Virus record (IMG/VR): IMGVR_UViG_3300030616_000016
Span: 1-64,000 of that record
Direction: 5' to 3' (one strand)
DNA length: 64,000 bases
Shown here one piece after another: positions 13,759-32,874 of this stretch. The notes below the pieces were generated by a model that searched no databases, was not told the origin of the DNA, and was given only the letters and a program-made list of their open reading frames with translations. Made by a program: the position numbers and the translations under genes. Positions within the stretch are counted from its first letter, which is position 1; every line of letters begins with the position of its first letter.

Positions 13759-14415
13759 CTACGCTACATCGTAGCTGATTGTTACAAATCTTGGTGCAAA
13801 CTCACGACTGCCTATTATTTCATCATACAAAACAAAATCCATCTCGCTTATATTTGTTGCATTATGTATGGAATATTTACATTCATTATATCCTAGAATA
13901 CTCATTGTTTCAATCATATTATTTTTAGCATCCTGATGTGAATCACATAAGCCGCCGAATACTTCTTCAGAAGGAGAAAATTGCTTTCTTCCTAATGATA
14001 TATCGAATATAGGATCCATTAAAGCGTTCATAAATAGTTCTGCATGATTTTCATCTGATGTTATAATTACAGAAAATGCGGCGCCTATTAATACACTCTT
14101 AGTAATAATAATTGTATTGTTTGGCGTCCCGTTCTGATTCATTCTATCAGTATAATTTTTATATCCATTAGTGAGTGTGTTTCGTTGGTCTTCTATATGT
14201 CCTTCACTAAACACATAGGTATCCATACTGATACTGTTATTAACTTCAAGAATTTTGTCGGTATCTTCTCTTTCTATTCCAAGTGATGCACATAGCATCC
14301 CAACAACACCGCTTTTGGTTGGAAATCTGAGCGTCTTCTTAAACCTGTTTGGGCTTCTATCTCCCCATGACTGCTCTGGTCCAATTAAATTCATGATAAT
14401 ATATTTACTGTTCAT
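13759..14415 (-). CDS. cas5e: Type I-E Cas5e
   Basis: GPEQSWG, PTKSGVVGML, LGRK motifs. Confidence 0.9.
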   Translation of the reverse strand: MNSKYIIMNLIGPEQSWGDRSPNRFKKTLRFPTKSGVVGMLCASLGIEREDTDKILEVNNSISMDTYVFSEGHIEDQRNTLTNGYKNYTDRMNQNGTPNNTIIITKSVLIGAAFSVIITSDENHAELFMNALMDPIFDISLGRKQFSPSEEVFGGLCDSHQDAKNNMIETMSILGYNECKYSIHNATNISEMDFVLYDEIIGSREFAPRFVTISYDVA

Positions 14416-14439
14416 AGCTTCTCCAATTATATGTTAACA

Positions 14440-14894
14440 ACTTATTCCCCACGCATGTGGGGCAAACGTGCAAGCAGGGACTGACGCCCCTCGGAATTGA
14501 GATTCATCCCCACGCATGTGGGGTACACTGTTCTTGGTGTAACTCTTTTAAAGGCATCTGCGATTCATCCCCACGCATGTGGGGCAAACATTCCGTATAT
14601 TTCTGCTTCACGGCTTAACATGGATTCATCCCCACGTATGTGGGGCAAACGCATCCTCGCACTGCCGGTAAAGATACGCCAGCGATTCATCCCCACGCAT
14701 GTGGGGCAAACATTTGTTTGATGCCATGCTCTCGTGCAAGGCGCGATTCATCCCCACGCATGTGGGGCAAACAATGGGTTTCGGCGGCGGTCATGGCATT
14801 TTCTCGATTCATCCCCACGCATGTGGGGCAAACAATGGGTTTCGGCGGCGGTCATGGCATTTTCTCGATTCATCCCCACGCATGTGGGGCAAAC
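14440..14894 (-). CRISPR. Type I-E CRISPR array 1: 8 repeats (terminal one degenerate), 7 spacers
   Basis: 28-bp repeat GTTTGCCCCACATGCGTGGGGATGAATC (minus strand), 61-bp period. Confidence 0.97.
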
Positions 14895-14941
14895 ACCTAC
14901 ATCTTGTAGATGTAGGTGTTGGTTTTGCTACATATTGTATA

Positions 14942-16081
14942 CTAGATTCCCTCTAATATACCTGCTACCGCTGCATCAATTTTAGTATCACCTTTCATAC
15001 CAGTTGTACACTCGAACTTAGGATTGATACAAAACTTTTCTTTAGCTTCGTTCCACTTGTCAGATACTCTTTTGATAGATTCTTCCAAGCAGTTTTTACC
15101 CAGTTCAACAGGGGTTAAGAACTGATCACCGAACGTTTTTGGATAGCCGTTCTTTCTGATCATAAGAATATATGCAGGATAAGTTGATGCAAAGTAAGAT
15201 GTGCTCATTCCTGATGGAGCGGCCATGATTGAACAGACAAGCGCGCATTTAAGTACACCTCTGAACTCTTCATCGTCAAGAACACCGCCAATATTATTCT
15301 CACTTCTGAGCTGATCAAGATTGATAGACTTGAACATATAATAGCAACCGGTATTTGTTTCTTGATAATCCATATGAGCTGCGCCGGCATCATCTTTCTC
15401 ATGCATTTCTTCAGCAGCAATGAACGCATTGATACTTGGAACAGTTCTATGGGTTGTGAATGCAGAGGAGCTTTTTACAGCAGACTCTATATTATCTCTG
15501 CCGGCAATCATTCTTCCAAACAAATAGATATCTGACATATCCTTACATATAGTATCAGTAGCTTGAGTGATTGCTTTTATCGCTTCACTTCTCTTATCAG
15601 GATCAGTCTTGTATGTCAGCTTTTTGTATTTTTCTTTAGTAAATTCTTGAGAAGTTTTGATATCACATGCTTGGACCTTGCCTATATCCTCTTTGTGAGC
15701 TCTTAGAATATCAGCAATGTTTGCCATTTCCTGATTTGAAACAAATACAATAGTAGACAACTTATTAATATCATCTTTATGTGATCCTTTAATGCCATCA
15801 GTACAAATACGCTGAAAGTATGGCATTTCTTCTTCTGGAACCACGTCTGCTATCGCCTTAGCAACTTCTCTGGTGATGTATTTAGTACGATTGCCGCCGA
15901 AGTATTCCGGCATCTCTTCCTTACATACGGTTCTCCAAGCTCTCTTCAATGCTTGAGAAGAAATCATTCCTCTAAGCGAGTCATTAATGTTGACGCTCTT
16001 AGGTGTTCCATCCATGTCTCTATTCATACAGTGAATAGGAAATTCCTGAATTGTGTGTATCTCGATGTGATCCATTTCCAA
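14942..16081 (-). CDS. cas7: Type I-E Cas7 (Cse4)
   Basis: MNRDMDGTPK, ISSQALKRAWR, LFGRM, AFTTH. Confidence 0.92.
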   Translation of the reverse strand: MEMDHIEIHTIQEFPIHCMNRDMDGTPKSVNINDSLRGMISSQALKRAWRTVCKEEMPEYFGGNRTKYITREVAKAIADVVPEEEMPYFQRICTDGIKGSHKDDINKLSTIVFVSNQEMANIADILRAHKEDIGKVQACDIKTSQEFTKEKYKKLTYKTDPDKRSEAIKAITQATDTICKDMSDIYLFGRMIAGRDNIESAVKSSSAFTTHRTVPSINAFIAAEEMHEKDDAGAAHMDYQETNTGCYYMFKSINLDQLRSENNIGGVLDDEEFRGVLKCALVCSIMAAPSGMSTSYFASTYPAYILMIRKNGYPKTFGDQFLTPVELGKNCLEESIKRVSDKWNEAKEKFCINPKFECTTGMKGDTKIDAAVAGILEGI

Positions 16082-16091
16082 CTCCTAATAG

Positions 16092-16667
16092 TTACTTTAT
16101 TGCTTTAAGTGTGATCATTCCATAACCAAATGATTTATATGGCCCAATGCCATTTCTAAATACATTGATAAGACTCTCTCTATCTTTTACTTCCAATACA
16201 CCTACAAATACAGCAGTGCTTATGATGCCGTTCTCGACTTCATTCTTCATGAATACAGAATCAGTATTCTTTGTAATGCTGGTAATTGTAACTTCTTGTG
16301 GCTTAAGCTTCCTGAGTATCCAATCTTTTTTATCTTCTTCTTTGATTATAGGAATTCTGGTAGGTTTGCCATCGTTGTATTTTTTGATGCATGGCGCGGC
16401 TTCAACATTAAACAAATACTTTGACCAATTAAACATCTTTTCTGGTATGCTTATGGTCTCAACATTGAAGTCATCAATCTTAGAGGGAGTTATATCCGAC
16501 AATATGATAAACATATGTCCTTCTCTTTCCTCAGTATATTTGAATAAAAACTGCCTACTATCCAATTGACTGAAAGCTTTCCATATAAACTGATGTCTAT
16601 GATATGGATCATTTAGACAATTCATATAGAAGTTTTCATCATCTAATATTAATCTTGATGCATACAT
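16092..16667 (-). CDS. cas6e: Type I-E Cas6e (Cse3)
   Basis: MYASRL, DPYHRHQ, GIGPYKSFGYG Gly-rich loop. Confidence 0.92.
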   Translation of the reverse strand: MYASRLILDDENFYMNCLNDPYHRHQFIWKAFSQLDSRQFLFKYTEEREGHMFIILSDITPSKIDDFNVETISIPEKMFNWSKYLFNVEAAPCIKKYNDGKPTRIPIIKEEDKKDWILRKLKPQEVTITSITKNTDSVFMKNEVENGIISTAVFVGVLEVKDRESLINVFRNGIGPYKSFGYGMITLKAIK

Positions 16668-17204
16668 CTATTCATCACCTCCCATACACAACTGTTCTTC
16701 TGTGAGGAGGGAGTTTTTATTTCCCCAATATTGAATAGCCCAGTTTTCTCGTACTTGACAGTTCCATTCAAGAATGTTGTGACAAAGCTCATCAAGATCA
16801 TAATACAATGATTTGAAATCAATTGCAATATTCTTGTCTATCATATGCGTTACAGATCTTTTAATAAGTTCAAGCATAGATGACGTGGTATTTGTTTTCA
16901 TGATGCAGTGGAAAATCGTTTCTGTAGAGCTAGATGATCTATTTACAAGTAGTTTCATACACTTACCAAATTTATTTCTGCCACTGGTCTCAGCCTTTTG
17001 ATATAAATATGCAATTGTAGCAGCTACATCTACTCTAACTTTATCAGATAGATTAAATCCAGCTTCAATTAGAACTGGATATATTTTGCATCTAGTATTC
17101 CTATTAATCCCATATTTAATTAGGCCTCTTAATGCACCATCATACTTACTTCTTGCTACAATCTTCAGTAGCCTGTCTATAGGATATTCTTGTGTTTCTG
17201 ACAT
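16668..17204 (-). CDS. cse2: Type I-E small subunit Cse2/Cas11
   Basis: Operon position, size, IDF..L..DL and WA..YW motifs. Confidence 0.8.
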   Translation of the reverse strand: MSETQEYPIDRLLKIVARSKYDGALRGLIKYGINRNTRCKIYPVLIEAGFNLSDKVRVDVAATIAYLYQKAETSGRNKFGKCMKLLVNRSSSSTETIFHCIMKTNTTSSMLELIKRSVTHMIDKNIAIDFKSLYYDLDELCHNILEWNCQVRENWAIQYWGNKNSLLTEEQLCMGGDE

Positions 17205-17216
17205 TATGTATTTCTC

Positions 17217-18731
17217 CTAGGATTGTATAAACTTGTCTCTTAAATTAACAATATCTCTGTTTAGACTATTCTTAGCTTGAACATAAGCACGAATGTCTCT
17301 AGCTGATGACTTTCCACAGATACTATCAAATATTTGCAAAGCAGTGCGGATAACTGGAGATACCCACTTTATCTTCAGGTTTTCTATAGCATTTTCACTA
17401 TTGTCCTCAATAAGCTCTATTAGTATCTTATATTTATTATCCATCTTTGACCAAAACTCTGTCAAAGGATTATATCCCTGACTAGTATCTCTATTAGACT
17501 TAATCCTTTTAAAATATAAATTTATTTTCTCTAATAAAATACGTCCGATTTCATCCATGAATTTACAACTCTTAATATACTTATCAATAGATGATCTTTC
17601 TCTGATGTTCTTTGGCATTACCCCAATCCACTCATCTATATCAAATAGCTTTGTTTTTCTGTTCATGAAATTTGCTTGTACAGACCAAAGGACTATATAA
17701 GGACTACTAATTTCATTGGCCATTTCTCGTAATTGTCTGATATGTAGATTGGTTTTTGCTTGATCATCATATGTATTAATTACGGCTCCTAGATCTTTCC
17801 ATGCATAACTTCCTTTACGTAATGCAAAGTAGCGCTCTTCGCCCTTATAGTTTTTGCGCACTACAGTTTCAGGCTCTTTAACTAATATATTCCCATTAAC
17901 TTGTTTACGTAATTCAGGACAAATTGTTGTTCCGCTAACGAACCTTTTTGTTTCTCTGTCAATCTTTAATATACATGACCAGCTACACATTCTACCAAGA
18001 TATGTTTTATAAGCGTTTTTAGCAAATTCTTCGTCATTGACAGAACTAGGTTGCGTTTCCCACACTGGTTTACCCCATGATTCTTCTGGATTTGAGTAGC
18101 CAAGAAATGGTAGATTTTCTTTAAATATCATATTCATATGAATAGTTTCTTTAAGTGTATTACCAATAAGCTTAGTCATATTTCTATCGGTTCCAACACC
18201 TCTTACCTGGTAGTTGCCAAGTTTTTCTCCCCATGTGATTGGCTGTGCTGTGCCACCAGATGTAAACGTATGGAATGTAATAAGATTTTTGGCTATATTT
18301 GCGTCGCTAATATCTTCTGGTTTATAAGGCCTTGAATTAATACAATCATCAGATCTTGATGCGGTTTGTGATTGTATATTTAACTGAGATACGCATATGC
18401 CCTTTTCCCAGTCTGTGTTTTCTATTGATGGCACCTGCATAAAAGCCCGGTCTCCATATAGGTCAAACAGGTCTACTTTATTATTAATATATTCAATAGC
18501 AGAATCTTTAAACGTATCTTTAATTCTGGTCCACTCTTCCATGTTATCGGGGCCATCAATAGCTGCTTGGGATATACAAACCAACATTCTAATTAATGAC
18601 ATTCTAACAATAGCAGACTCATTGATAAACATAATATTATCTAAGTTCTGGAATAGATCTTTAAGTCCATATGTAGTGAATCGGTTATCTTGAAGCCTAA
18701 CTCGGATCCATGCATCATTTACTAAGTTCAT
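17217..18731 (-). CDS. cas8e: Type I-E large subunit Cas8e (Cse1)
   Basis: MNLVNDAWI, FDLY...AFMQ, GNTLKETI, PVWE. Confidence 0.88.
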   Translation of the reverse strand: MNLVNDAWIRVRLQDNRFTTYGLKDLFQNLDNIMFINESAIVRMSLIRMLVCISQAAIDGPDNMEEWTRIKDTFKDSAIEYINNKVDLFDLYGDRAFMQVPSIENTDWEKGICVSQLNIQSQTASRSDDCINSRPYKPEDISDANIAKNLITFHTFTSGGTAQPITWGEKLGNYQVRGVGTDRNMTKLIGNTLKETIHMNMIFKENLPFLGYSNPEESWGKPVWETQPSSVNDEEFAKNAYKTYLGRMCSWSCILKIDRETKRFVSGTTICPELRKQVNGNILVKEPETVVRKNYKGEERYFALRKGSYAWKDLGAVINTYDDQAKTNLHIRQLREMANEISSPYIVLWSVQANFMNRKTKLFDIDEWIGVMPKNIRERSSIDKYIKSCKFMDEIGRILLEKINLYFKRIKSNRDTSQGYNPLTEFWSKMDNKYKILIELIEDNSENAIENLKIKWVSPVIRTALQIFDSICGKSSARDIRAYVQAKNSLNRDIVNLRDKFIQS

Positions 18732-21250
18732 TCATCTTCTCCTAGTTTATATTTTTCTAGGCCAATAACATCATTATATTTGTAGCCTATATATTTACCA
18801 TAGAATGAGATTCTGCCGTCAAAACCAATTTTAAGGATTGGTGTTCTAGTGTTAAAGTACTTTTGCAGAAATTCTTCTGTTCTCAAATCGAACTTGTCAA
18901 ATACATATGATGGAAGTGATACAAGATTTCTATGTATTTGTATATCTGTCTCCCTATCCTTTAATCCTGGTATAATGGTAACTTCTATGTCATTAGATAG
19001 AGTAATGGTATTGTGCTTCTTATAATTGGATTGTTTGATAAGCAAACAACCAATCTTTCTTATGTTGCTGTGACGAGTTTCGACTTCTGCATCATCATAG
19101 AGTTCATTATAATTTTCATTTGTGATTGTGGCAGCTAGATTTTCTAGACTGTCCTTCTTTATCATATCTTTCTCAAACAGTTCCTGTATGTTCTTGTTCT
19201 TATGTTCTGTCTCTTTATATACAGCCTCTAAAAGAGTTTTTACATCTTCTGGTGTGTTAATCACTTCTGTATTCTTAATTACTTCATATGTTCTAAAAAG
19301 AATATATGTGGAATAGACGAAGTGATCATTAAATCCAAATATTTTGCTAAGATCAGATTCTTTACATAGCTTATCTATATTATCATGCATGATGAGCACT
19401 TCAGGACATACAGCTATTCTTTCTCGTATGTGTCTCCATAGCCTACCAAGTCTTTGGATTAGCATATCTATTGGACATAGTTTTGTAATGAGAAAATCAA
19501 AGTCGATGTCAACACTTTGTTCTAGTACTTGTGTAGATACAAGGATACATCCTTCAGCGTCTCCATCTTTACCTAAGGCATCTAACCACTCCTTTTCTAT
19601 CTCTATTCTTTTCCACTCTGGATAGTTAGAATGCAAGATGCCTATCTTAATATCATCACTGGTTTTTGATTTAATGAGTTTGTATAGATGCTGACACTCT
19701 TTTACTGTGTTCATTATGCATCCTACTCTTTGACCTGCTCTAGCTCTATTAATGGCTATTTCTGCAGATTTGCAATAGTCCGTTTCTTGCATTGTAACTT
19801 TTATATTTTTGTTTACTCCCTGACTACGTACCTTAATGTTCTTAATCTTAGTGCTTTGCTTAATAGTAATAAGGGGATAATCGTGCTTATTTATATCATC
19901 AGATTCTAGAATTTGAGTGCGCATTTTATTTGTCAGTGTAGCAGATAGAATGATAACTGTGCAATCAATCTTGGATAGTAAATTTATGAGCCTGTGAATA
20001 AGTGTGTTGGTAAACACATCGTATGAATGGATCTCATCTAGAATTACAACCTTTCCAGCCAGTCCGGCTTTTCTCAATGTATTATATCTAACAGGTAGAA
20101 CACCAAGTAAAGATTGATCTATTGTACCAACAGCAAACTGACTAAGCAAAGCATAGTTTTTATAATCAAACCAGTTTTTACCTTCTATCTTAATAGAGCT
20201 ATCTGATACAGGGCTTTGTATATTATTCTCATACATCCATGCCTTACCATGAGCTAATTTTACGTAGTCTTTATTATTAGATATAGTTTTTATGAAAGGC
20301 TGAATTCTTTCATAGATCTTATTACTTGTGGTTCTCGTGGGTAATGCGAAATATATCCCGCTGGCTTCTTTCCTATCAAGCAATTTATATGCTGCATAAA
20401 GAGCCGCTTCAGTTTTGCCTAATCCAGTAGGCGCTTCTACAATGGAAATAGCATTTTTAGTTATATTATTTGACAGTTCATATTGAACGTCATAAGGTGA
20501 ATAACCAAAAATGTCTTTAAAGGATAGATTGGGCAAAATATCCAGCTGTTTCCATCCGCATAGCTGTAATGCTTTGCTTGCATCATTATTATTTATATCT
20601 TCGAATAAGCTATTGTTAGATGCTATATGATCTGATATAGATACAAATCCTGTAATGGTATCTATTATATCTATATCTATTATCTCAGACAGCGCTCTCT
20701 TTTCATCTGCAGTTAGATCAGCTAACTGATGTTCTATAAATAGCTTTCGTTGTTCTGACCACGTACTTGATCCATATCTTTCACTTTCATCATTGTCTGC
20801 TATATCATACTTAGTAGCTCCATGATGCTTATATGCAATAATGCTCAGAATGTTGGCAATAGATGCCTCAGCATATGTTCGTAAAGATGTGTTACCTATT
20901 TTAGCATGGTTATCTTCGAATGACATTCCAAATAGTTTACATAGATACATAAAGATAGGATCATTTCTTAATTCTTCTTGTGCCTCAGCTGGTAGATTGT
21001 TAAACATCTTTTTATCAAACCCTGGACTTATTTTACCAGTATCATGTGTTCTGGATCCGCATATAACTGGTAAACTATATTTATCAATCATAAAATCAGG
21101 CATGATATTGATAAGTTCTCTTGCAACATCTTCTACCTTTTTAGAATGTTGCAACACTGTCTCGCCAAAACCACCATCTTTTGTTTTTGCTGGACAGTCG
21201 AGCCATGGTATAGCAGGAATATCCACGACATTAGATTCTATTCTTGGCAT
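18728..21250 (-). CDS. cas3: Cas3 HD nuclease-helicase
   Basis: HDTGK, HHG, SDH, APTGLGKT, DEIH, SAT, QRLGRLWRH. Confidence 0.95.
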   Translation of the reverse strand: MPRIESNVVDIPAIPWLDCPAKTKDGGFGETVLQHSKKVEDVARELINIMPDFMIDKYSLPVICGSRTHDTGKISPGFDKKMFNNLPAEAQEELRNDPIFMYLCKLFGMSFEDNHAKIGNTSLRTYAEASIANILSIIAYKHHGATKYDIADNDESERYGSSTWSEQRKLFIEHQLADLTADEKRALSEIIDIDIIDTITGFVSISDHIASNNSLFEDINNNDASKALQLCGWKQLDILPNLSFKDIFGYSPYDVQYELSNNITKNAISIVEAPTGLGKTEAALYAAYKLLDRKEASGIYFALPTRTTSNKIYERIQPFIKTISNNKDYVKLAHGKAWMYENNIQSPVSDSSIKIEGKNWFDYKNYALLSQFAVGTIDQSLLGVLPVRYNTLRKAGLAGKVVILDEIHSYDVFTNTLIHRLINLLSKIDCTVIILSATLTNKMRTQILESDDINKHDYPLITIKQSTKIKNIKVRSQGVNKNIKVTMQETDYCKSAEIAINRARAGQRVGCIMNTVKECQHLYKLIKSKTSDDIKIGILHSNYPEWKRIEIEKEWLDALGKDGDAEGCILVSTQVLEQSVDIDFDFLITKLCPIDMLIQRLGRLWRHIRERIAVCPEVLIMHDNIDKLCKESDLSKIFGFNDHFVYSTYILFRTYEVIKNTEVINTPEDVKTLLEAVYKETEHKNKNIQELFEKDMIKKDSLENLAATITNENYNELYDDAEVETRHSNIRKIGCLLIKQSNYKKHNTITLSNDIEVTIIPGLKDRETDIQIHRNLVSLPSYVFDKFDLRTEEFLQKYFNTRTPILKIGFDGRISFYGKYIGYKYNDVIGLEKYKLGEDE

Positions 21251-21269
21251 TAGTCATAATCCTATTATA

Positions 21270-21968
21270 AATAAATCCCCACGTATGTGGGGCAAACAAT
21301 ATTCCTGAGTACAAATTCAGAAAAGATTTCGATTCATCCCCACTTATGTGGGGCAAACTTTGGGGTGGGTTAAAGTGTTGCGACGCTGATCGATTCATCC
21401 CCACGCGTGTGGGGTACACATGTTGACATGATCCGGCAGGACGGCACGCTGAGATTCATCCCCACGCGTGTGGGGTACACATGCAAAGCAAGAAGATGGT
21501 GCAGTCGAGGAGCGATTCATCCCCACGCGTGTGGGGTACACATGATATGCCATGGATTATCCCTGATTACCCTCGATTCATCCCCACGCACGTGGGGTAC
21601 ACTTCAGAGTCGCTATTGGATTTGAACCTGACACCGATTCATCCCCACGCACGTGGGGTACACGCATAACGGGAGATCGGACGCGAAGCGTAGAGCGATT
21701 CATCCCCACGCACGTGGGGTACACCAGTTTTTTGCCAATCAGGATGGAGCAGTTTGCGATTCATCCCCACGCACGTGGGGTACACATAACAAGGCAGCAG
21801 GCCATCAATGCCCAGTGCGATTCATCCCCACGCGTGTGGGGTACACATGTTGACATGATCCGGCAGGACGGCACGCTGAGATTCATCCCCACGCGTGTGG
21901 GGTACACATGATATCGCTTTTGCGAAGCTTCCAGTCCGGAGATTCATCCCCACGCGTGTGGGGTACAC
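21270..21968 (-). CRISPR. Type I-E CRISPR array 2: 12 repeats, 11 spacers
   Basis: Repeat GTGTACCCCACRYGCGTGGGGATGAATC (minus strand), 61-bp period. Confidence 0.97.
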
Positions 21969-22253: not shown

Positions 22254-22505
22254 TTAAAAGCGCTTTTTAGCAATTCTGTCTTCGATATCAAGGAACAGTC
22301 TTTTGGTTACTTGGAATCCGCATACATAGTATGTGAAATCCGTAGGAATGAACTCTTCCCTAATTGGCTGGCCACATAGAACACAGTTCTCAGTAATAAT
22401 CTCTATTTGACGCCTATGATTTAAGCTTATAGGCAAATCGCTATCAATAAGGCTATAAATATCGAACGGCAAACTTGACATAGTTGAATAAACTTTCTCT
22501 TGCAT
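22254..22505 (-). CDS. Hypothetical protein
   Basis: SD AAGGAG. Confidence 0.5.
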   Translation of the reverse strand: MQEKVYSTMSSLPFDIYSLIDSDLPISLNHRRQIEIITENCVLCGQPIREEFIPTDFTYYVCGFQVTKRLFLDIEDRIAKKRF

Positions 22506-22558
22506 ATTCTAACTCCTTACAATAAGTGTTGTGATAAATAGTACGATCAAAACAGTAC

Positions 22559-22892
22559 GACTTTTCCCCACACATTGTGGGGCTAACTTACTCTGGGCAA
22601 TAATTCATAGTCCAGTTAGTGATTCATCCCCACATACGTGGGGTAAACGGAGGAGACCTGGATGGCGATATGTGTATGTTAGATTCATCCCCACGCATGT
22701 GGGGAAAACGCAATTTGTTTACGCTCGCCATCTTTATAAGCAGATTCATCCCCACATACGTGGGGCAAACTTGACGAAGAAAGATCCGTCAATTCAAACG
22801 CTCGATTCATCCCCACGCACGTGGGGTAAACGATTTTGCTCTTTGTGTCGCCTGCTCAACAAAAGATTCATCCCCACATACGTGGGGTACAC
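22559..22892 (-). CRISPR. Type I-E CRISPR array 3: 6 variable repeats, 5 spacers
   Basis: Same repeat family, 61-bp period. Confidence 0.95.
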
Positions 22893-22913
22893 CTACATAT
22901 TGTATAATAAAAA

Positions 22914-22966
22914 TACCCCTGACAGGAGTCGAACCTGCACGCCCGAAGGCACTAGATTCTAAGTCT
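22914..22966 (-). pseudogene. 3' half of an interrupted tRNA-Leu(TAG)
   Basis: AGACTTAGAATCTAG, variable arm, T arm, then CAGGGGTA; no adjoining 5' half. Confidence 0.85.
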
Positions 22967-23363
22967 TACGGCTAAGTTGTAATCTTCTACACCATTTACC
23001 GACGCACGATTTACCGCAGAATGGACCGTTCATTTTATCTTTCTGTCTGCGGCGTTCATCCTTTGCCATTACCTTTTTTGTATTACCACATTCAACGCAT
23101 ACTATGGTTGTCCATTCTATCTGCTTGCGATGATGATTTATATGTTCCGCTTTTGATTTAATTTCTAAGTTATATATACTATTATTCTGTTTGTTTCCAT
23201 CCTTGTGATGTACAAGTTCAGATGAGTCCAATTTTCTTCCAAGACTCTTCTCCATAACTTCTCGGTGCATCAACACAGTTGCTTTGCTGTCATCGCTGTA
23301 TTTTACTGTACACGCAAGATATCCTTCTAGGTTGAACCAATTAGATCGGTAAACTTCTTTCAT
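22959..23363 (-). CDS. HNH homing endonuclease
   Basis: MHR..., VHHKDGNKQNN..NL; SD GGAG before ATG 23363. Confidence 0.88.
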   Translation of the reverse strand: MKEVYRSNWFNLEGYLACTVKYSDDSKATVLMHREVMEKSLGRKLDSSELVHHKDGNKQNNSIYNLEIKSKAEHINHHRKQIEWTTIVCVECGNTKKVMAKDERRRQKDKMNGPFCGKSCVGKWCRRLQLSRKT

Positions 23364-23384
23364 CTTGATCTCCAAATATAATAA

Positions 23385-23466
23385 TGGGAGTAGAGGGACT
23401 CGAACCCTCACGCCTTGCGGCAACGGTTTCTAAGACCGTCCTGTCTGCCATTTCCAGCATACTCCC
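23385..23466 (-). tRNA. tRNA-Leu(TAG)
   Basis: ACGGT-CTTAGAA-ACCGT, long variable arm. Confidence 0.9.
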
Positions 23467-23468
23467 AA

Positions 23469-23496
23469 AGTATAATATATATCCTAAGAAAGTCAA
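23469..23496 (-). promoter_or_regulatory. sigma70-like promoter TTGACT-N16-TATACT
   Basis: Inside the inserted tRNA-HNH cassette, very close to the tRNA 5' end. Confidence 0.5.
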
Positions 23497-23509
23497 GTAA
23501 AGTGTTTGC

Positions 23510-23545
23510 CTAATCTAGCGTGTATGCCAGTTTCACCACAGGGGC
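23510..23545 (-). pseudogene. 5' half of the interrupted tRNA-Leu(TAG)
   Basis: GCCCCTG-TG-D arm-CTAGATTAG; acceptor strand pairs with the 22914 half. Confidence 0.85.
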
Positions 23546-23552
23546 ATAATAA

Positions 23553-23639
23553 TGGTAGCCAGGGAGGGAGTCGAACCCACACACCGCAATGGATATCCGG
23601 GCTTAAACCGGATGCGTCTGCCAGTTCCGCCACCTGGCC
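23553..23639 (-). tRNA. tRNA-Leu(TAA)
   Basis: TCCGG-TTTAAGC-CCGGA, CCA end. Confidence 0.9.
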
Positions 23640-23641
23640 AT

Positions 23642-24145
23642 TTATTCTTGATGTTTATGCTTCATCTTTTCTAGTGCAGTTTGTATGATATGATTAATTT
23701 CTACTTCAGATCCACAGAATGGACAGTTCGTTTTATCATGAATACTGCGAATAAAAATGCTTTGTGTTGGTATTTCATCTCTATCTACTTCTCTAAAGCT
23801 GTCATGTTCTAGTATAATAATAATTGCTTTATCACTGTAGTCTACTTCAATGCTCATGATTCGAGACTCGTTAATCTTTACATCTGGATAGTCTTCTATC
23901 ATATAGCAATAGCAGCTATTGTCCATCATACGAAGCAAGGATATAAAATCACAATCAACTTGTATAAATTTACCTGTTTGTGGTAATATAACATTTCTAT
24001 TCATAGTCGAATAAGGTATCCATCCAGATTCACTAGTAGAAGTAGTAGTATGGGTGCTATTATAAGTAAGACCATTCACGAGATTTACTAGTGAATCCAT
24101 ATTAAAACTATTGCTGGTTGAATCATCCGTTGACATGTATCTCAC
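23642..24145 (-). CDS. Hypothetical protein with C-terminal CPFCG
   Basis: ORF; resembles 6740..7048. Confidence 0.55.
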   Translation of the reverse strand: MRYMSTDDSTSNSFNMDSLVNLVNGLTYNSTHTTTSTSESGWIPYSTMNRNVILPQTGKFIQVDCDFISLLRMMDNSCYCYMIEDYPDVKINESRIMSIEVDYSDKAIIIILEHDSFREVDRDEIPTQSIFIRSIHDKTNCPFCGSEVEINHIIQTALEKMKHKHQE

Positions 24146-24425
24146 TCCATATTAAAAAGAATAAACCAGTTGCGGCGTGTGAAAGATGGCTTAGGCCTGA
24201 TTCTTCATCTAGTTTCTCACCCTTACGATATGCTAAAAGATGACGCAAAACGGCGGCATAATATCTATCATTCATGTTTTCTACATGCTTCCAGTTATCG
24301 TCGTCGTATTTCTTTGCGCCGAATGTAAGTACCTTTCCTACTTCTTCTATACATTCAGGTGGAATAAGATCCATGCGGATTTTATCGCCGTCAAACTTCA
24401 TACCATTAGTATCTGACATTCTCAT
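24123..24425 (-). CDS. dATP/dGTP diphosphohydrolase-like (DUF5664)
   Basis: KFDGDK.RMDLIP, GAKKY..NW, RH, D.ESGLSHL.HA. Confidence 0.8.
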   Translation of the reverse strand: MRMSDTNGMKFDGDKIRMDLIPPECIEEVGKVLTFGAKKYDDDNWKHVENMNDRYYAAVLRHLLAYRKGEKLDEESGLSHLSHAATGLFFLIWSEIHVNG

Positions 24426-25631: not shown

Positions 25632-26234
25632 CTAGTCTTCATCAAGTTCAACATCCCAATAAGCATCAGAAACAAACTTCTGCCATGACACTTTTCTCTT
25701 AAATATAGGTATTTTAAGAGCAGTCATGCCATGAGGCTCAATTGGTTTCTTTCTTAGCTTCATACCAGATTCTGCAGGAGTTCTATTGCCCTTATTGTTG
25801 TTACATTTAACACAGGCAATAACACAGTTCTTCCAGGTAGTTTTACCACCCTGTGCTTTAGGGATGATATGATCAATTGTGGCGTCTGAAGTTTGTAGCT
25901 GAACACCGCAGTATTGACATGAACAGCTATCACGTTTAAATAGATTGCGGCGTGACAGCTTCAACCGATGTGTAGGCATCTTGCCATAGCTAATCAGACG
26001 TATTACTTCAGGCACCTTTACTTCTAGTCTAACAGTTTTTATAAACTGTTCTCCTTCAACGACTTTCAAATCGGCCCATTCCTCAAAATTATATATAGAA
26101 TAGTCATCTGGTAGTATGGCTTGTGCACGGTCTTTAGCCATTAATTCAATGGCATGACGTACAGATGCAAATCCGATTGGCGTCCAGTTTTTGTTTAGTA
26201 CAAGCGTTGGTTCCTGAAGTACCACATTAATCAC
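25632..26234 (-). CDS. HNH endonuclease (McrA-like)
   Basis: LVLN..., RD..CQYCG, TIDHIIP..GG..W.N...C..CN. Confidence 0.9.
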   Translation of the reverse strand: MINVVLQEPTLVLNKNWTPIGFASVRHAIELMAKDRAQAILPDDYSIYNFEEWADLKVVEGEQFIKTVRLEVKVPEVIRLISYGKMPTHRLKLSRRNLFKRDSCSCQYCGVQLQTSDATIDHIIPKAQGGKTTWKNCVIACVKCNNNKGNRTPAESGMKLRKKPIEPHGMTALKIPIFKRKVSWQKFVSDAYWDVELDED

Positions 26235-26498: not shown

Positions 26499-26507
26499 AT
26501 ATATATT

Positions 26508-26583
26508 TGGTAGCGGGGCCGGGACTCGAACCCGACTTGGCGGATTATGGGGCCACCCAGACCACCTGGCCTTGCCCCCCGCG
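26508..26583 (-). tRNA. Atypical initiator-like tRNA-Met(CAT)
   Basis: CGCGGGG/CCCCGCT with 1:72 mismatch; loop CCCATAA; CCA. Confidence 0.7.
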
Positions 26584-28989: not shown

Positions 28990-29781
28990 CTATGTATATT
29001 TAGTTTCTGGTGATGCCCATCCAGCAAAATCAGAAATATCTTGCTTATCAAAATCATCTGAATAATGTATCAAGTACATCTTGTCTTTGATTGATTTATC
29101 AAGCATTTTCAAGTCTGCTAATGGAGCATGAACAGCACCAGGAAAGAACTGCACGTCGTGAAACATTATTTTTGACTTATGAGCATACATTTCAATAAGT
29201 TCTGGATCAAATCTTGTGTCACCAGATACAAATATTTTCTCATCAGGAAGATATATACCAAATGATATAAAGGAGCTTTCCCAGTCTGCAGATTGTTCAG
29301 GGATATGTTTGGTTCTGAATATCTCTATATTTATTCCTTGATATTCAACTTCGAATATCTCTCTAGGTTCATGTTGTTTCCATTTAGGTCTAATAACATC
29401 AAAGAAATCTTCAAAATTAAGTTTCTTCATCTGATCGTTTTCTTCATTGTATTCAAGACCACCGCGTAATGTATAATCCCAGAGAATTCTTTGGTAGTTT
29501 TGTTCAATAATCATCTTGAGTTTTGGTTTACCTAGAAACTCTTGGCCGACATATCTATTCATAAGAGCTAGCATTTCTATTCCACCAACATGATCTGCAT
29601 GAGAATGTGTTGGGAGAATACATTCTATATCTATCGGTTGGATTCCTTTATCGGCGATAGCTCTTGGGCCGGTCATGCCAAAATCTACAAAGACATCGCT
29701 TTTTGTACCATGAATGATAAAGTTAGTTTGGTGATTTTTTGCCGCGAAGGCTGATCCAACACCAAGGAATTCGATGCTCAT
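28990..29781 (-). CDS. Metallo-beta-lactamase-fold hydrolase (RNase Z-like)
   Basis: FLGVGSA, THSHADH, SGDT, VHA, HY motifs; located in the tRNA cluster. Confidence 0.8.
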   Translation of the reverse strand: MSIEFLGVGSAFAAKNHQTNFIIHGTKSDVFVDFGMTGPRAIADKGIQPIDIECILPTHSHADHVGGIEMLALMNRYVGQEFLGKPKLKMIIEQNYQRILWDYTLRGGLEYNEENDQMKKLNFEDFFDVIRPKWKQHEPREIFEVEYQGINIEIFRTKHIPEQSADWESSFISFGIYLPDEKIFVSGDTRFDPELIEMYAHKSKIMFHDVQFFPGAVHAPLADLKMLDKSIKDKMYLIHYSDDFDKQDISDFAGWASPETKYT

Positions 29782-30895: not shown

Positions 30896-30917
30896 TTTAC
30901 TCCTAAAATATTATAAA

Positions 30918-30999
30918 ACTTGCGAGTGGGAATTGAACCTGCTTGTCATTTGACAGAGAAACTCCGGAGTCGCTCCAGCCCACCAGGGCTAACCGCAAG
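30918..30999 (-). ncRNA. Atypical tRNA-like RNA with a tRNA-Sec-style D arm
   Basis: CTTGCG/CGCAAG acceptor, AGCCC-TGGT-GGGCT, variable arm, GGTTCAATTCC; no canonical anticodon loop. Confidence 0.6.
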
Positions 31000-32289: not shown

Positions 32290-32373
32290 TCGGGACGGGA
32301 GGATTTGAACCTCCGAGGGCATTAATGCCACCTGGTCCCAAACATAGCGTTATAGCAGATTTAGCTATAGACC
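32290..32373 (-). pseudogene. Damaged tRNA(TGG) with an intact 3' half (long variable arm) and a diverged 5' half
   Basis: TTTGGGA-CCAGG...GGTTCAAATCC-CGTCCCGA; 5' strand does not pair. Confidence 0.7.
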
Positions 32374-32874
32374 AATATTTTTAATTTGTCCATTATGAAA
32401 TGCGGCATGACAATTTTTACACAATACAGTGCATTTTTTAAGCTCAGACTCTAATCTCTTCCATGACCAATATCTCATTGTTTTAAATGATTGGTCCTTA
32501 ACATTAGGGTCTATATGGTGAATATCCAAAGAGCAAATGAATTTATTGAATCCACAATGCATGCACTTCCCGCCTAAAAACTCCACTGCCTTTTGTCTTG
32601 TTTCTTTTGCCTTTTTGTTATTATACGCATTCTGACATTTGCCGCAAATACTCTTTTTATGTCCATAAAACTTTTTGGGATCCGTCTCTCCACAAGAACA
32701 TTTCCTTATAGTGGCCATATCTTTTGGGAGTTTTCCTTTTGGTCCACGCCTAGTTTTCAATCCAAATTTTTTCAACCAATATCTAACACAGTCCTGAGAT
32801 ACTGACAATTTGTCTGATATCTGGCGTAAGCTCAAACCTTCTTCTATTAATTTATTTAAAATATTCTGTTCCAT
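32365..32874 (-). CDS. HTH-HNH endonuclease
   Basis: N-terminal HTH; GGKCMHCG...LDIHH...KCTVLCKNCH. Confidence 0.85.
   Translation of the reverse strand: MEQNILNKLIEEGLSLRQISDKLSVSQDCVRYWLKKFGLKTRRGPKGKLPKDMATIRKCSCGETDPKKFYGHKKSICGKCQNAYNNKKAKETRQKAVEFLGGKCMHCGFNKFICSLDIHHIDPNVKDQSFKTMRYWSWKRLESELKKCTVLCKNCHAAFHNGQIKNIGL

Follow-up and report, generated by a model that had tools for sequence, protein, structure and literature searches.

The locus analyzed here raises the question of why a phage should carry a tRNA-Leu(UAG) gene broken in two around an HNH nuclease gene together with a second, intact tRNA-Leu(UAG) gene, and whether the broken gene still yields a tRNA. The window, i.e., the whole 64,000-nucleotide stretch of DNA that was analyzed, comprises positions 1 to 64,000 of IMGVR_UViG_3300030616_000016, a 231,647-bp phage contig of IMG/VR from marine-sediment metagenome runs. 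Its tRNA cluster, on the minus strand, extends from about 35625 down to 22914; ARAGORN called 21 tRNAs in it, and Rfam alone added a few more. At the downstream end of the cluster, the order on the minus strand is tRNA-Leu(UAA) (23639-23553), a 7-nt spacer, the 5' half of the broken gene, a 43-nt AT-rich leader, the intact tRNA-Leu(UAG), a ribosome-binding site (RBS) with a 134-aa open reading frame (ORF), and finally the 3' half. The individual features are as follows.

23545-23510, minus strand: 5' part of the broken tRNA-Leu(UAG) (acceptor GCCCCTG, TG, D arm GTGAAACTGGCATACAC, G, CTAGA, TTAG; G1 is 23545)
23518-23514, minus strand: anticodon-stem strand CTAGA of the 5' part
23513-23510, minus strand: TTAG ending the 5' part, which may be tRNA loop or insert
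23509-23467, minus strand: cassette leader, AT-rich, beginning GCAAAC
23496-23491, minus strand: -35-like TTGACT in the cassette leader
23488-23481, minus strand: conserved CTTAGGAT in the cassette leader, probably an old anticodon-loop scar
23474-23469, minus strand: -10-like TATACT in the cassette leader
23466-23385, minus strand: intact cassette tRNA-Leu(UAG), 82 nt (ARAGORN tag call; Rfam 54.4 bits)
23373-23370, minus strand: GGAG ribosome-binding site, 6 nt before the HNH ATG
23363-22959, minus strand: HNH_3 and zinc-ribbon gene, 134 aa (Pfam HNH_3; homing-endonuclease-like)
22961-22959, minus strand: TAG stop codon of the HNH gene, equal to positions 34-36 (the anticodon) of the 3' half
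22966-22914, minus strand: 3' part of the broken tRNA-Leu(UAG) (variable arm, T arm, acceptor CAGGGGT, discriminator A73 at 22914)
22966-22964, 22963-22957 and 22956-22952, minus strand: start of the 3' part, namely AGA, the full loop CTTAGAA and the stem strand TCTAG

The broken gene is of class II. The acceptor strands of its halves pair at 7 of 7 positions (one G-U) and the anticodon stem at 5 of 5, and ARAGORN called a tRNA-Leu(tag) once 23514 was joined to 22963, as well as in neighboring registers. From the native, unjoined sequence, ARAGORN called no tRNA for the split gene. Profiles of the 5' and 3' parts of tRNA-Leu, searched with nhmmer, detected both halves (E values of 2.5e-5 and 8.2e-5). 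As an unbroken sequence, GCTAGACTTAGAATCTAGTG, the rejoined arm plus its flanks, is present in 13 viral and 90 bacterial contigs, so the register of the rejoined halves is a natural one. The split tRNA-Leu(UAG) claimed by the first-pass annotation was thereby borne out at the same positions, and its figure of about 545 bp for the separation at the anticodon arm agrees with the 543 to 547 bp measured. This insert is filled by the 82-nt tRNA and the 405-nt ORF. AGA(C)TTAG is duplicated imperfectly, with one copy at each junction, and the 5' copy is without C32. Neither piece of the broken gene is able to give a tRNA. The cassette tRNA, which has an A discriminator and no encoded CCA, is the sole intact tRNA-Leu(UAG) within the 64-kb window of the 231-kb contig.

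With a complex sediment metagenome sequenced at low depth (about 6x), and with tRNA genes being repetitive, similar tRNA sequences might have misjoined contigs of different phages. However, a 906-nt Logan contig from run X1, an independent assembly, covers 22808-23713 with both junctions and zero differences, and thus reproduces the JGI assembly. In addition, the acceptor stems of the halves match, which a random chimera would not give, and the same architecture occurs in other samples and with other assemblers. An assembly chimera is therefore extremely improbable, and the misassembly against which the first-pass annotation had cautioned is contradicted at both junctions.

An uninterrupted allele in a close relative of the phage was not found in IMG/VR, in the Logan contigs or among the matches to GCTAGACTTAGAATCTAGTG; the best identity of a whole tRNA to the rejoined gene was 67/82. 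An exact search of IMG/VR with the 5' half returned the source contig only, and blastn against INPHARED in distant mode gave short tRNA matches only and hence no related isolate. Joints of 22963 to 23614, considered as an empty allele, were rejected as matches to unrelated bacterial tRNA-Leu genes. These joints had arisen when contigs of two runs were compared at 85% likeness, which mostly picked up bacterial tRNA-Leu.

Could the halves nevertheless be joined as RNA, by self-splicing, protein splicing or trans-assembly, so that the resident tRNA is still made? Relatives of the HNH ride in group I introns that split tRNA-Arg(UCU), and a group I intron splits tRNA-Leu(UAA) in one of the loci compared (L053; L numbers denote these loci). 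In the window insert, however, Rfam found no group I intron and an R/S motif scan no R/S-like elements. A covariance model made from the intron-borne relatives (R1) found nothing in the window or in any Leu-clade locus, the best score across 22500-24000 with filters off being 2.8 bits, whereas it does detect the relatives and the L053 intron. The space of the insert is moreover taken up by the tRNA and the ORF, and the HNH ORF is a separate gene with its own RBS, outside any intron core found. The junctions do not abut cleanly as exons that restore a tRNA, with AGA(C)TTAG present on both sides. As for the complementarity of archaeal-type split tRNAs, between a trailer after the 5' half and a leader before the 3' half, it was not seen here: the trailer-leader duplex reached -11.9 kcal/mol versus -11.2 ± 3.0 kcal/mol for shuffles, 37% of which were as good, i.e., no better than chance. 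Splicing or trans-assembly of the halves thus appears very unlikely, and continued production of the resident tRNA by this route is a reading to which very little credence can be given. The insert that the first-pass annotation had called freestanding shows no group I core by any of the three approaches.

The intron-borne cousins were obtained by scanning for uncalled T arms with a distant matching acceptor strand. At six loci, about 600 nt encoding an HNH of the Arg clade interrupt a tRNA-Arg(UCU)-like gene after U34. In these inserts, the last 165-180 nt at the 3' end show much stronger conservation than the ORF and fold with compensatory changes in 23/45 pairs. The inserts also have AGAGACTA...ATAGTCC in common with the L053 group I intron validated by Rfam, and these motifs match the classical R and S elements of group I introns. 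Model R1 recovered its six training loci and, beyond them, two more loci of the Arg clade as well as the intron of L053 (47 bits). At the gathering threshold, Rfam Intron_gpI left the six scanned Arg loci unrecognized, L139 even at E <= 10; the Arg-clade introns were recognized via covariation analysis and the custom model. The Arg clade is a sister clade residing in group I introns of tRNA-Arg(UCU) genes. The Arg loci are L139, L140, L065, L073, L077, L107, L195 and L148, with the HNH at the 5' end of the intron, and ARAGORN misses their split tRNA-Arg(UCU) genes. In L053, a group I intron of 275 nt that lacks an endonuclease gene interrupts the tRNA-Leu(UAA) at 5-374 after U34. The tRNA pieces on both sides of a "76-aa ORF" in this locus had been taken for another cassette; this candidate was dropped as an ordinary group I intron, the ORF being a spurious gene call.

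The nuclease gene itself was examined next to its relatives. As first annotated, the insert holds an HNH gene whose TAG stop coincides with the anticodon of the 3' half: residues 31-74 of the ORF match Pfam HNH_3 (PF13392) with an E value of 8e-10. H52, H53, N61, N65, H74 and H78, together with the zinc-ribbon residues C89, C92, C116 and C120, are invariant in an alignment of 30 relatives, and the AlphaFold model is confident (pLDDT 94.6). Neither sequence nor Foldseek searches of the PDB gave a match. From these data, the gene looks intact and active. In a 5.8-billion-protein set, 58 relatives were found, about 30 of them full-length at 43-66% identity. An IMG/VR scan with the single protein gave only distant HNH_3 genes with no tRNA nearby, and alignment-based scans were needed to reach the close relatives.

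The neighbors of these relatives are tRNA genes. Every relative of at least 50% identity whose context was fetched directly adjoins a tRNA-Leu gene, and all Leu-clade members lie within 0-150 nt of one, usually UAG. The tRNA-Leu(UAG) is immediately upstream of the HNH in the window, L052, L053-56, L059, L060, L061 and L219. It is immediately downstream, with the ORF running into the tRNA, in L057 and L220, and L138 and L218 show the same order with AAG-type tRNAs. In a maximum-likelihood tree, the Leu clade (20 rows; support 96/94) is separate from the Arg clade (14 rows; 98/98), and the window HNH is sister to that of L219 (64% identity), followed by L052. The specificity of the nuclease thus appears to track the tRNA isotype (Leu clade, Arg clade). 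When all ORFs of the window's 26-kb neighborhood were compared with the relatives' loci by tblastn, only HNH genes were in common, namely this family and two others that are also present in the window's tRNA cluster. Such unrelated neighborhoods around shared HNH genes have the look of mobile genes. A 26-nt stretch in the zinc ribbon of the HNH (23014-23039, DKMNGPFCG) is 88% identical to 23712-23737, in the C-terminal region of the upstream 167-aa ORF (DKTNCPFCG); kinship of the two genes was considered on this basis and dropped, as the proteins are otherwise unrelated.

Other features were noted in the window and at the relatives' loci. The second endonuclease gene, at 25632-26234 on the minus strand (HNH_5/HNH, E value of 1e-17), lies exactly between tRNA-Arg(ACG) and tRNA-Arg(TCT), with its TAG stop 1 nt before the next tRNA and relatives in L057, L060 and L053. 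A third nuclease-like gene at 32365-32874 (minus strand) has a helix-turn-helix (HTH), a faint HNH_2 match and a consensus TTGACA-N17-TATAAT promoter. It is followed by a tRNA 3' fragment at 32290-32345 (minus strand; variable arm, T arm, acceptor CGTCCCG A), for which no matching 5' part is visible. Two tRNA-like sequences at 26507-26575 and 30915-30990 (both minus strand) have good T arms and acceptor stems, odd D arms and no ARAGORN call; one of them is a weak Rfam tRNA-Sec match. An anti-Pycsar Apyc1-like gene of the metallo-beta-lactamase fold (28990-29781, minus strand; E value of 4e-31) lies inside the tRNA cluster, and a gene with a dATP/dGTP diphosphohydrolase N-terminal domain (24123-24425, minus strand; E value of 2e-33) lies near its downstream end.

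Beyond the cluster, a type I-E CRISPR-Cas interference set occupies 13759-21250 on the minus strand, comprising cas3, cse1, cse2, cas7, cas5 and a PF08798 (CRISPR_assoc) protein taken as cas6e. Two CRISPR arrays (21262-21968 and 22613-22892) have 28-nt repeats with a 61-nt period, and the second starts about 20 nt after the 3' end of the broken tRNA. One repeat-spacer-repeat unit is duplicated exactly (21391-21483 and 21818-21910). A spacer contains a perfect tRNA T-loop motif, GGTTCAAATCC, at 21618-21628 (minus strand) and may derive from another phage's tRNA region.

At the relatives' loci, the tRNA after the HNH of L218 (407-494) has an 8-nt anticodon loop, CTAAAGGA, one base longer than that of the otherwise corresponding tRNA-Leu(AAG) of L138; it is either a pseudogene or a reader of four-base codons. 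Some tRNAs at these loci have a class I shape, being 75-78 nt long with a short variable arm, together with leucine anticodons (TAG, CAG, CAA or TAA), and many of them adjoin HNH genes:

L058, 412-487 and 911-987: class I-shaped tRNAs with leucine anticodons
L061, 1103-1180: class I-shaped tRNA with a leucine anticodon
L062, 2262-2336: class I-shaped tRNA with a leucine anticodon
L052, 2429-2504: class I-shaped tRNA with a leucine anticodon
L057, 3639-3715: class I-shaped tRNA with a leucine anticodon
L220, 3396-3470: class I-shaped tRNA with a leucine anticodon

Does the intact tRNA belong to the nuclease gene or to the phage? The cassette tRNA is 75%, 73%, 67% and 66% identical to the HNH-linked tRNAs of L052, L057, L060 and L053, respectively, versus 59% to the broken tRNA-Leu(UAG) and 53% to the tRNA-Leu(UAA) of its own genome. 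Together with the ARAGORN and Rfam calls, this agrees with the intact but divergent tRNA of the first-pass annotation. An unusual D-arm start, TG[CT]TGGAA or TGTCGGAA in place of the usual TGGYG, was found in 7 of the 120 distinct class II tRNA-Leu genes in all DNA fetched, and six of these seven adjoin Leu-clade HNH genes, either upstream or downstream of the HNH. The window's cassette tRNA has the D-arm start TGCTGGAA, common to other HNH-linked tRNAs. Because the linked tRNAs share this rare signature, the tRNA and HNH appear to travel together. They seem to form a real co-inherited unit in unrelated phage contexts, for which the D-arm signature is the strongest evidence, and the view of the cassette as one module is upheld by this lineage of linked tRNAs. 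The immunity to cleavage ascribed to the cassette tRNA at first pass is not obviously encoded in L219, because the linked tRNA there has the CTAGA/TCTAG anticodon stem of the window's broken gene.

The leader preserves a further trace. It contains TTGACT-N16-TATACT, with the -10 ending 2 nt before the first base of the cassette tRNA. Four loci have a motif of this kind; its -10 and the tRNA are separated by 0-2 nt or, in L061, overlap at the first bases of the tRNA. The motif is doubtful as the tRNA's own promoter, since transcription from a standard start site would begin within the tRNA. It could drive the HNH gene, initiate exactly at the first base of the tRNA, or not act as a promoter at all. 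The promoter-like pattern reported at first pass is thus present, but its promoter role is doubtful, as the -10 abuts the tRNA and the spacer holds the conserved CTTAGGAT. In the window, L052, L053 and L061, CTTAGGAT is found 13-15 nt ahead of the cassette tRNA; in L220, it immediately precedes the RBS of the HNH. Its sequence is that of the tRNA-Leu(UAG) anticodon loop plus the next base. We infer that it is the scar of an earlier target carried along with the cassette, and that the 5' half in the window is the most recent layer. The overlap between the TAG stop and the anticodon is probably incidental, because relatives stop elsewhere in or before the neighboring tRNA: the HNH gene of L220 terminates within the D arm of the following tRNA and that of L138 within the anticodon loop; in L057, the gene runs past the 3' end of the following tRNA, and in L052 and L053, it stops short of that tRNA.

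A tRNA-Leu split around an HNH gene and an intact tRNA was found at three more loci, one in L220 and two in L057. The phage of L220 encodes a T7-like RNA polymerase, and the HNH at this locus shares 54% identity with that of the window. The layout of L220 is GGTCAAG...CCAGAC, 7 nt, TTAGGAT and the RBS, the HNH, tRNA(tag), and ...GA TCTGG...CTTGACCA (CTTGACC A), and the acceptor and anticodon-stem strands of its halves match perfectly. The first case in L057 reads GCCACAG..., HNH (34% identical), tRNA(taa), ...CTGTGGT A; the second, which is shorter, surrounds a 57%-identical HNH and a tRNA-Leu(tag). These loci share the flanking geometry, with diverged HNH genes and a gene order opposite to that of the window. 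To this extent, and by comparison, the homing element of the first-pass annotation gains support from the recurrence of the split design in L220 and L057.

At other loci, the picture is less tidy. In L052, L053, L058 and L061, the tRNA-HNH pair is immediately preceded, always at a corresponding position, by a 5' tRNA-Leu fragment (acceptor and D arm). In the first three, this fragment alone remains, and L061 adds a nonmatching 3' fragment after the HNH. In a half-profile scan of 12 loci, each uncalled 5' fragment with E<0.1 either adjoined an HNH-tRNA module or was a group I exon. Because only the 5' fragment is left or the fragments do not match, the junctions of many relatives are messy recombination products. 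The window's locus might likewise be a recombination scar with no dedicated element, in which breaks, spontaneous or induced by a nuclease, in a cluster of similar tRNAs were repaired by ectopic or microhomology recombination, the HNH is not specific to this tRNA, and the intact tRNA is a mere neighbor. The single or mismatched fragments of the relatives are in keeping with this, as are the other tRNA-like fragments and the two other HNH genes in the window's cluster; a precedent exists in the rearrangements driven by the nuclease SegB, which use microhomology between tRNA and nuclease genes and truncate the nuclease (PMC13096335). However, both halves in the window are complete, matched and undecayed and flank the module exactly, and the same geometry is seen in L220 and L057 despite diverged HNH genes and the opposite gene order. 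In addition, the linked tRNAs are a lineage of their own, and what follows the HNH is a 3' half, where simple tandem duplication would leave a complete tRNA. On balance, a mere scar seems unlikely.

It is instead probable that a freestanding, tRNA-specialized HNH gene with its linked tRNA-Leu(UAG) landed in the anticodon arm of a resident tRNA-Leu(UAG). The linked tRNA would take over CUN decoding, which would make the insertion tolerable without splicing. In co-infecting phages, tRNA-Leu genes free of the HNH would be recognized by the enzyme through their anticodon-arm DNA and broken there, and repair of the break would copy the HNH and the tRNA, with the conserved tRNA sequences on both sides as homology. 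The spare tRNA would then remove the cost that introns remove by splicing. The AGA(C)TTAG duplication and, inside the leader, the older CTTAGGAT scar would have been left behind by insertions that took place one after another and were in part illegitimate. Homing by double-strand-break repair normally makes no target duplications, which counts against this explanation. The cleavage and repair steps are modeled on SegB (PMC2330249; PMC13096335) and on intron homing in general. More tentatively, the HNH and tRNA may represent a distinct "self-compensating" homing cassette, kin of the tRNA-intron nucleases, in which a spare gene copy replaces the ribozyme. The halves might be kept as homology arms, refreshed with each homing, and the cassette might spread tRNA-Leu variants between unrelated phages.

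Several known systems resemble this arrangement in part. SegB of T4 and T6 is a freestanding GIY-YIG homing endonuclease in a tRNA cluster, which cuts tRNA genes, spreads with neighboring tRNA genes and recognizes the T-psi-C motif of many tRNAs (PMC2330249; PMC13096335). Like SegB, the window's HNH gene stands free among phage tRNA genes, and its ORF reaches up to or into the following tRNA; SegB also rearranges with tRNA genes via short homologies. The HNH would thus act in the manner of SegB without being related to it. In contrast, Pfam gives HNH_3 only, with no GIY-YIG domain; the HNH family tracks one isotype per clade; and a tRNA gene is split around the nuclease and a spare tRNA, whereas SegB lies between intact tRNA genes.

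The genes F-TflI/II/IV of phage T5 are HNH-type homing or nicking endonuclease genes among phage tRNA genes and are, by description, similar to the window's HNH in this respect. They are not known to split a target tRNA and supply a replacement for it. The HNH ORFs F-TflI/II/IV are mentioned for the T5 tRNA region (PMC2330249). Group I introns, with or without a homing endonuclease, occur in tRNA anticodon loops, e.g., that of tRNA-Leu(UAA) (PMC3984707). They share with the present case the insertion in the anticodon arm, and the sister clade of the HNH sits in such introns; here, unlike there, no ribozyme is present, the junctions are duplicated, and a second gene, rather than splicing, is proposed to meet the cost. 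In fractured genes, a protein gene is split by a freestanding homing endonuclease gene between split-intein halves, and protein trans-splicing restores the product (PMC2677866). Both arrangements have two collinear pieces around an endonuclease gene that is not itself spliced out, but in the window it is an RNA gene that is broken, nothing rejoins the pieces, and a spare copy is carried. In the full-text literature, which was covered incompletely, no phage tRNA gene was found that is split and accompanied by both a nuclease and a replacement tRNA.

Selfish nuclease genes usually spare their host by sitting between genes or in self-splicing introns or inteins. If the proposed explanation is true, the cassette would represent a third solution, in which the target gene is broken and a working copy is brought along. 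It would also explain the tRNA fragments and nuclease genes that litter the tRNA clusters of large phages, and would provide a set of small (about 134 aa) nucleases whose specificity apparently tracks the isotype (Leu and Arg clades). For annotation, tRNA finders and Rfam miss the broken halves as well as the intron-split tRNA-Arg genes. Finally, such cassettes would offer a route for tRNA genes between unrelated phages; the movement of tRNA genes is, as has been argued for SegB, relevant to phage escape from tRNA-cutting host defenses (PMC13096335).
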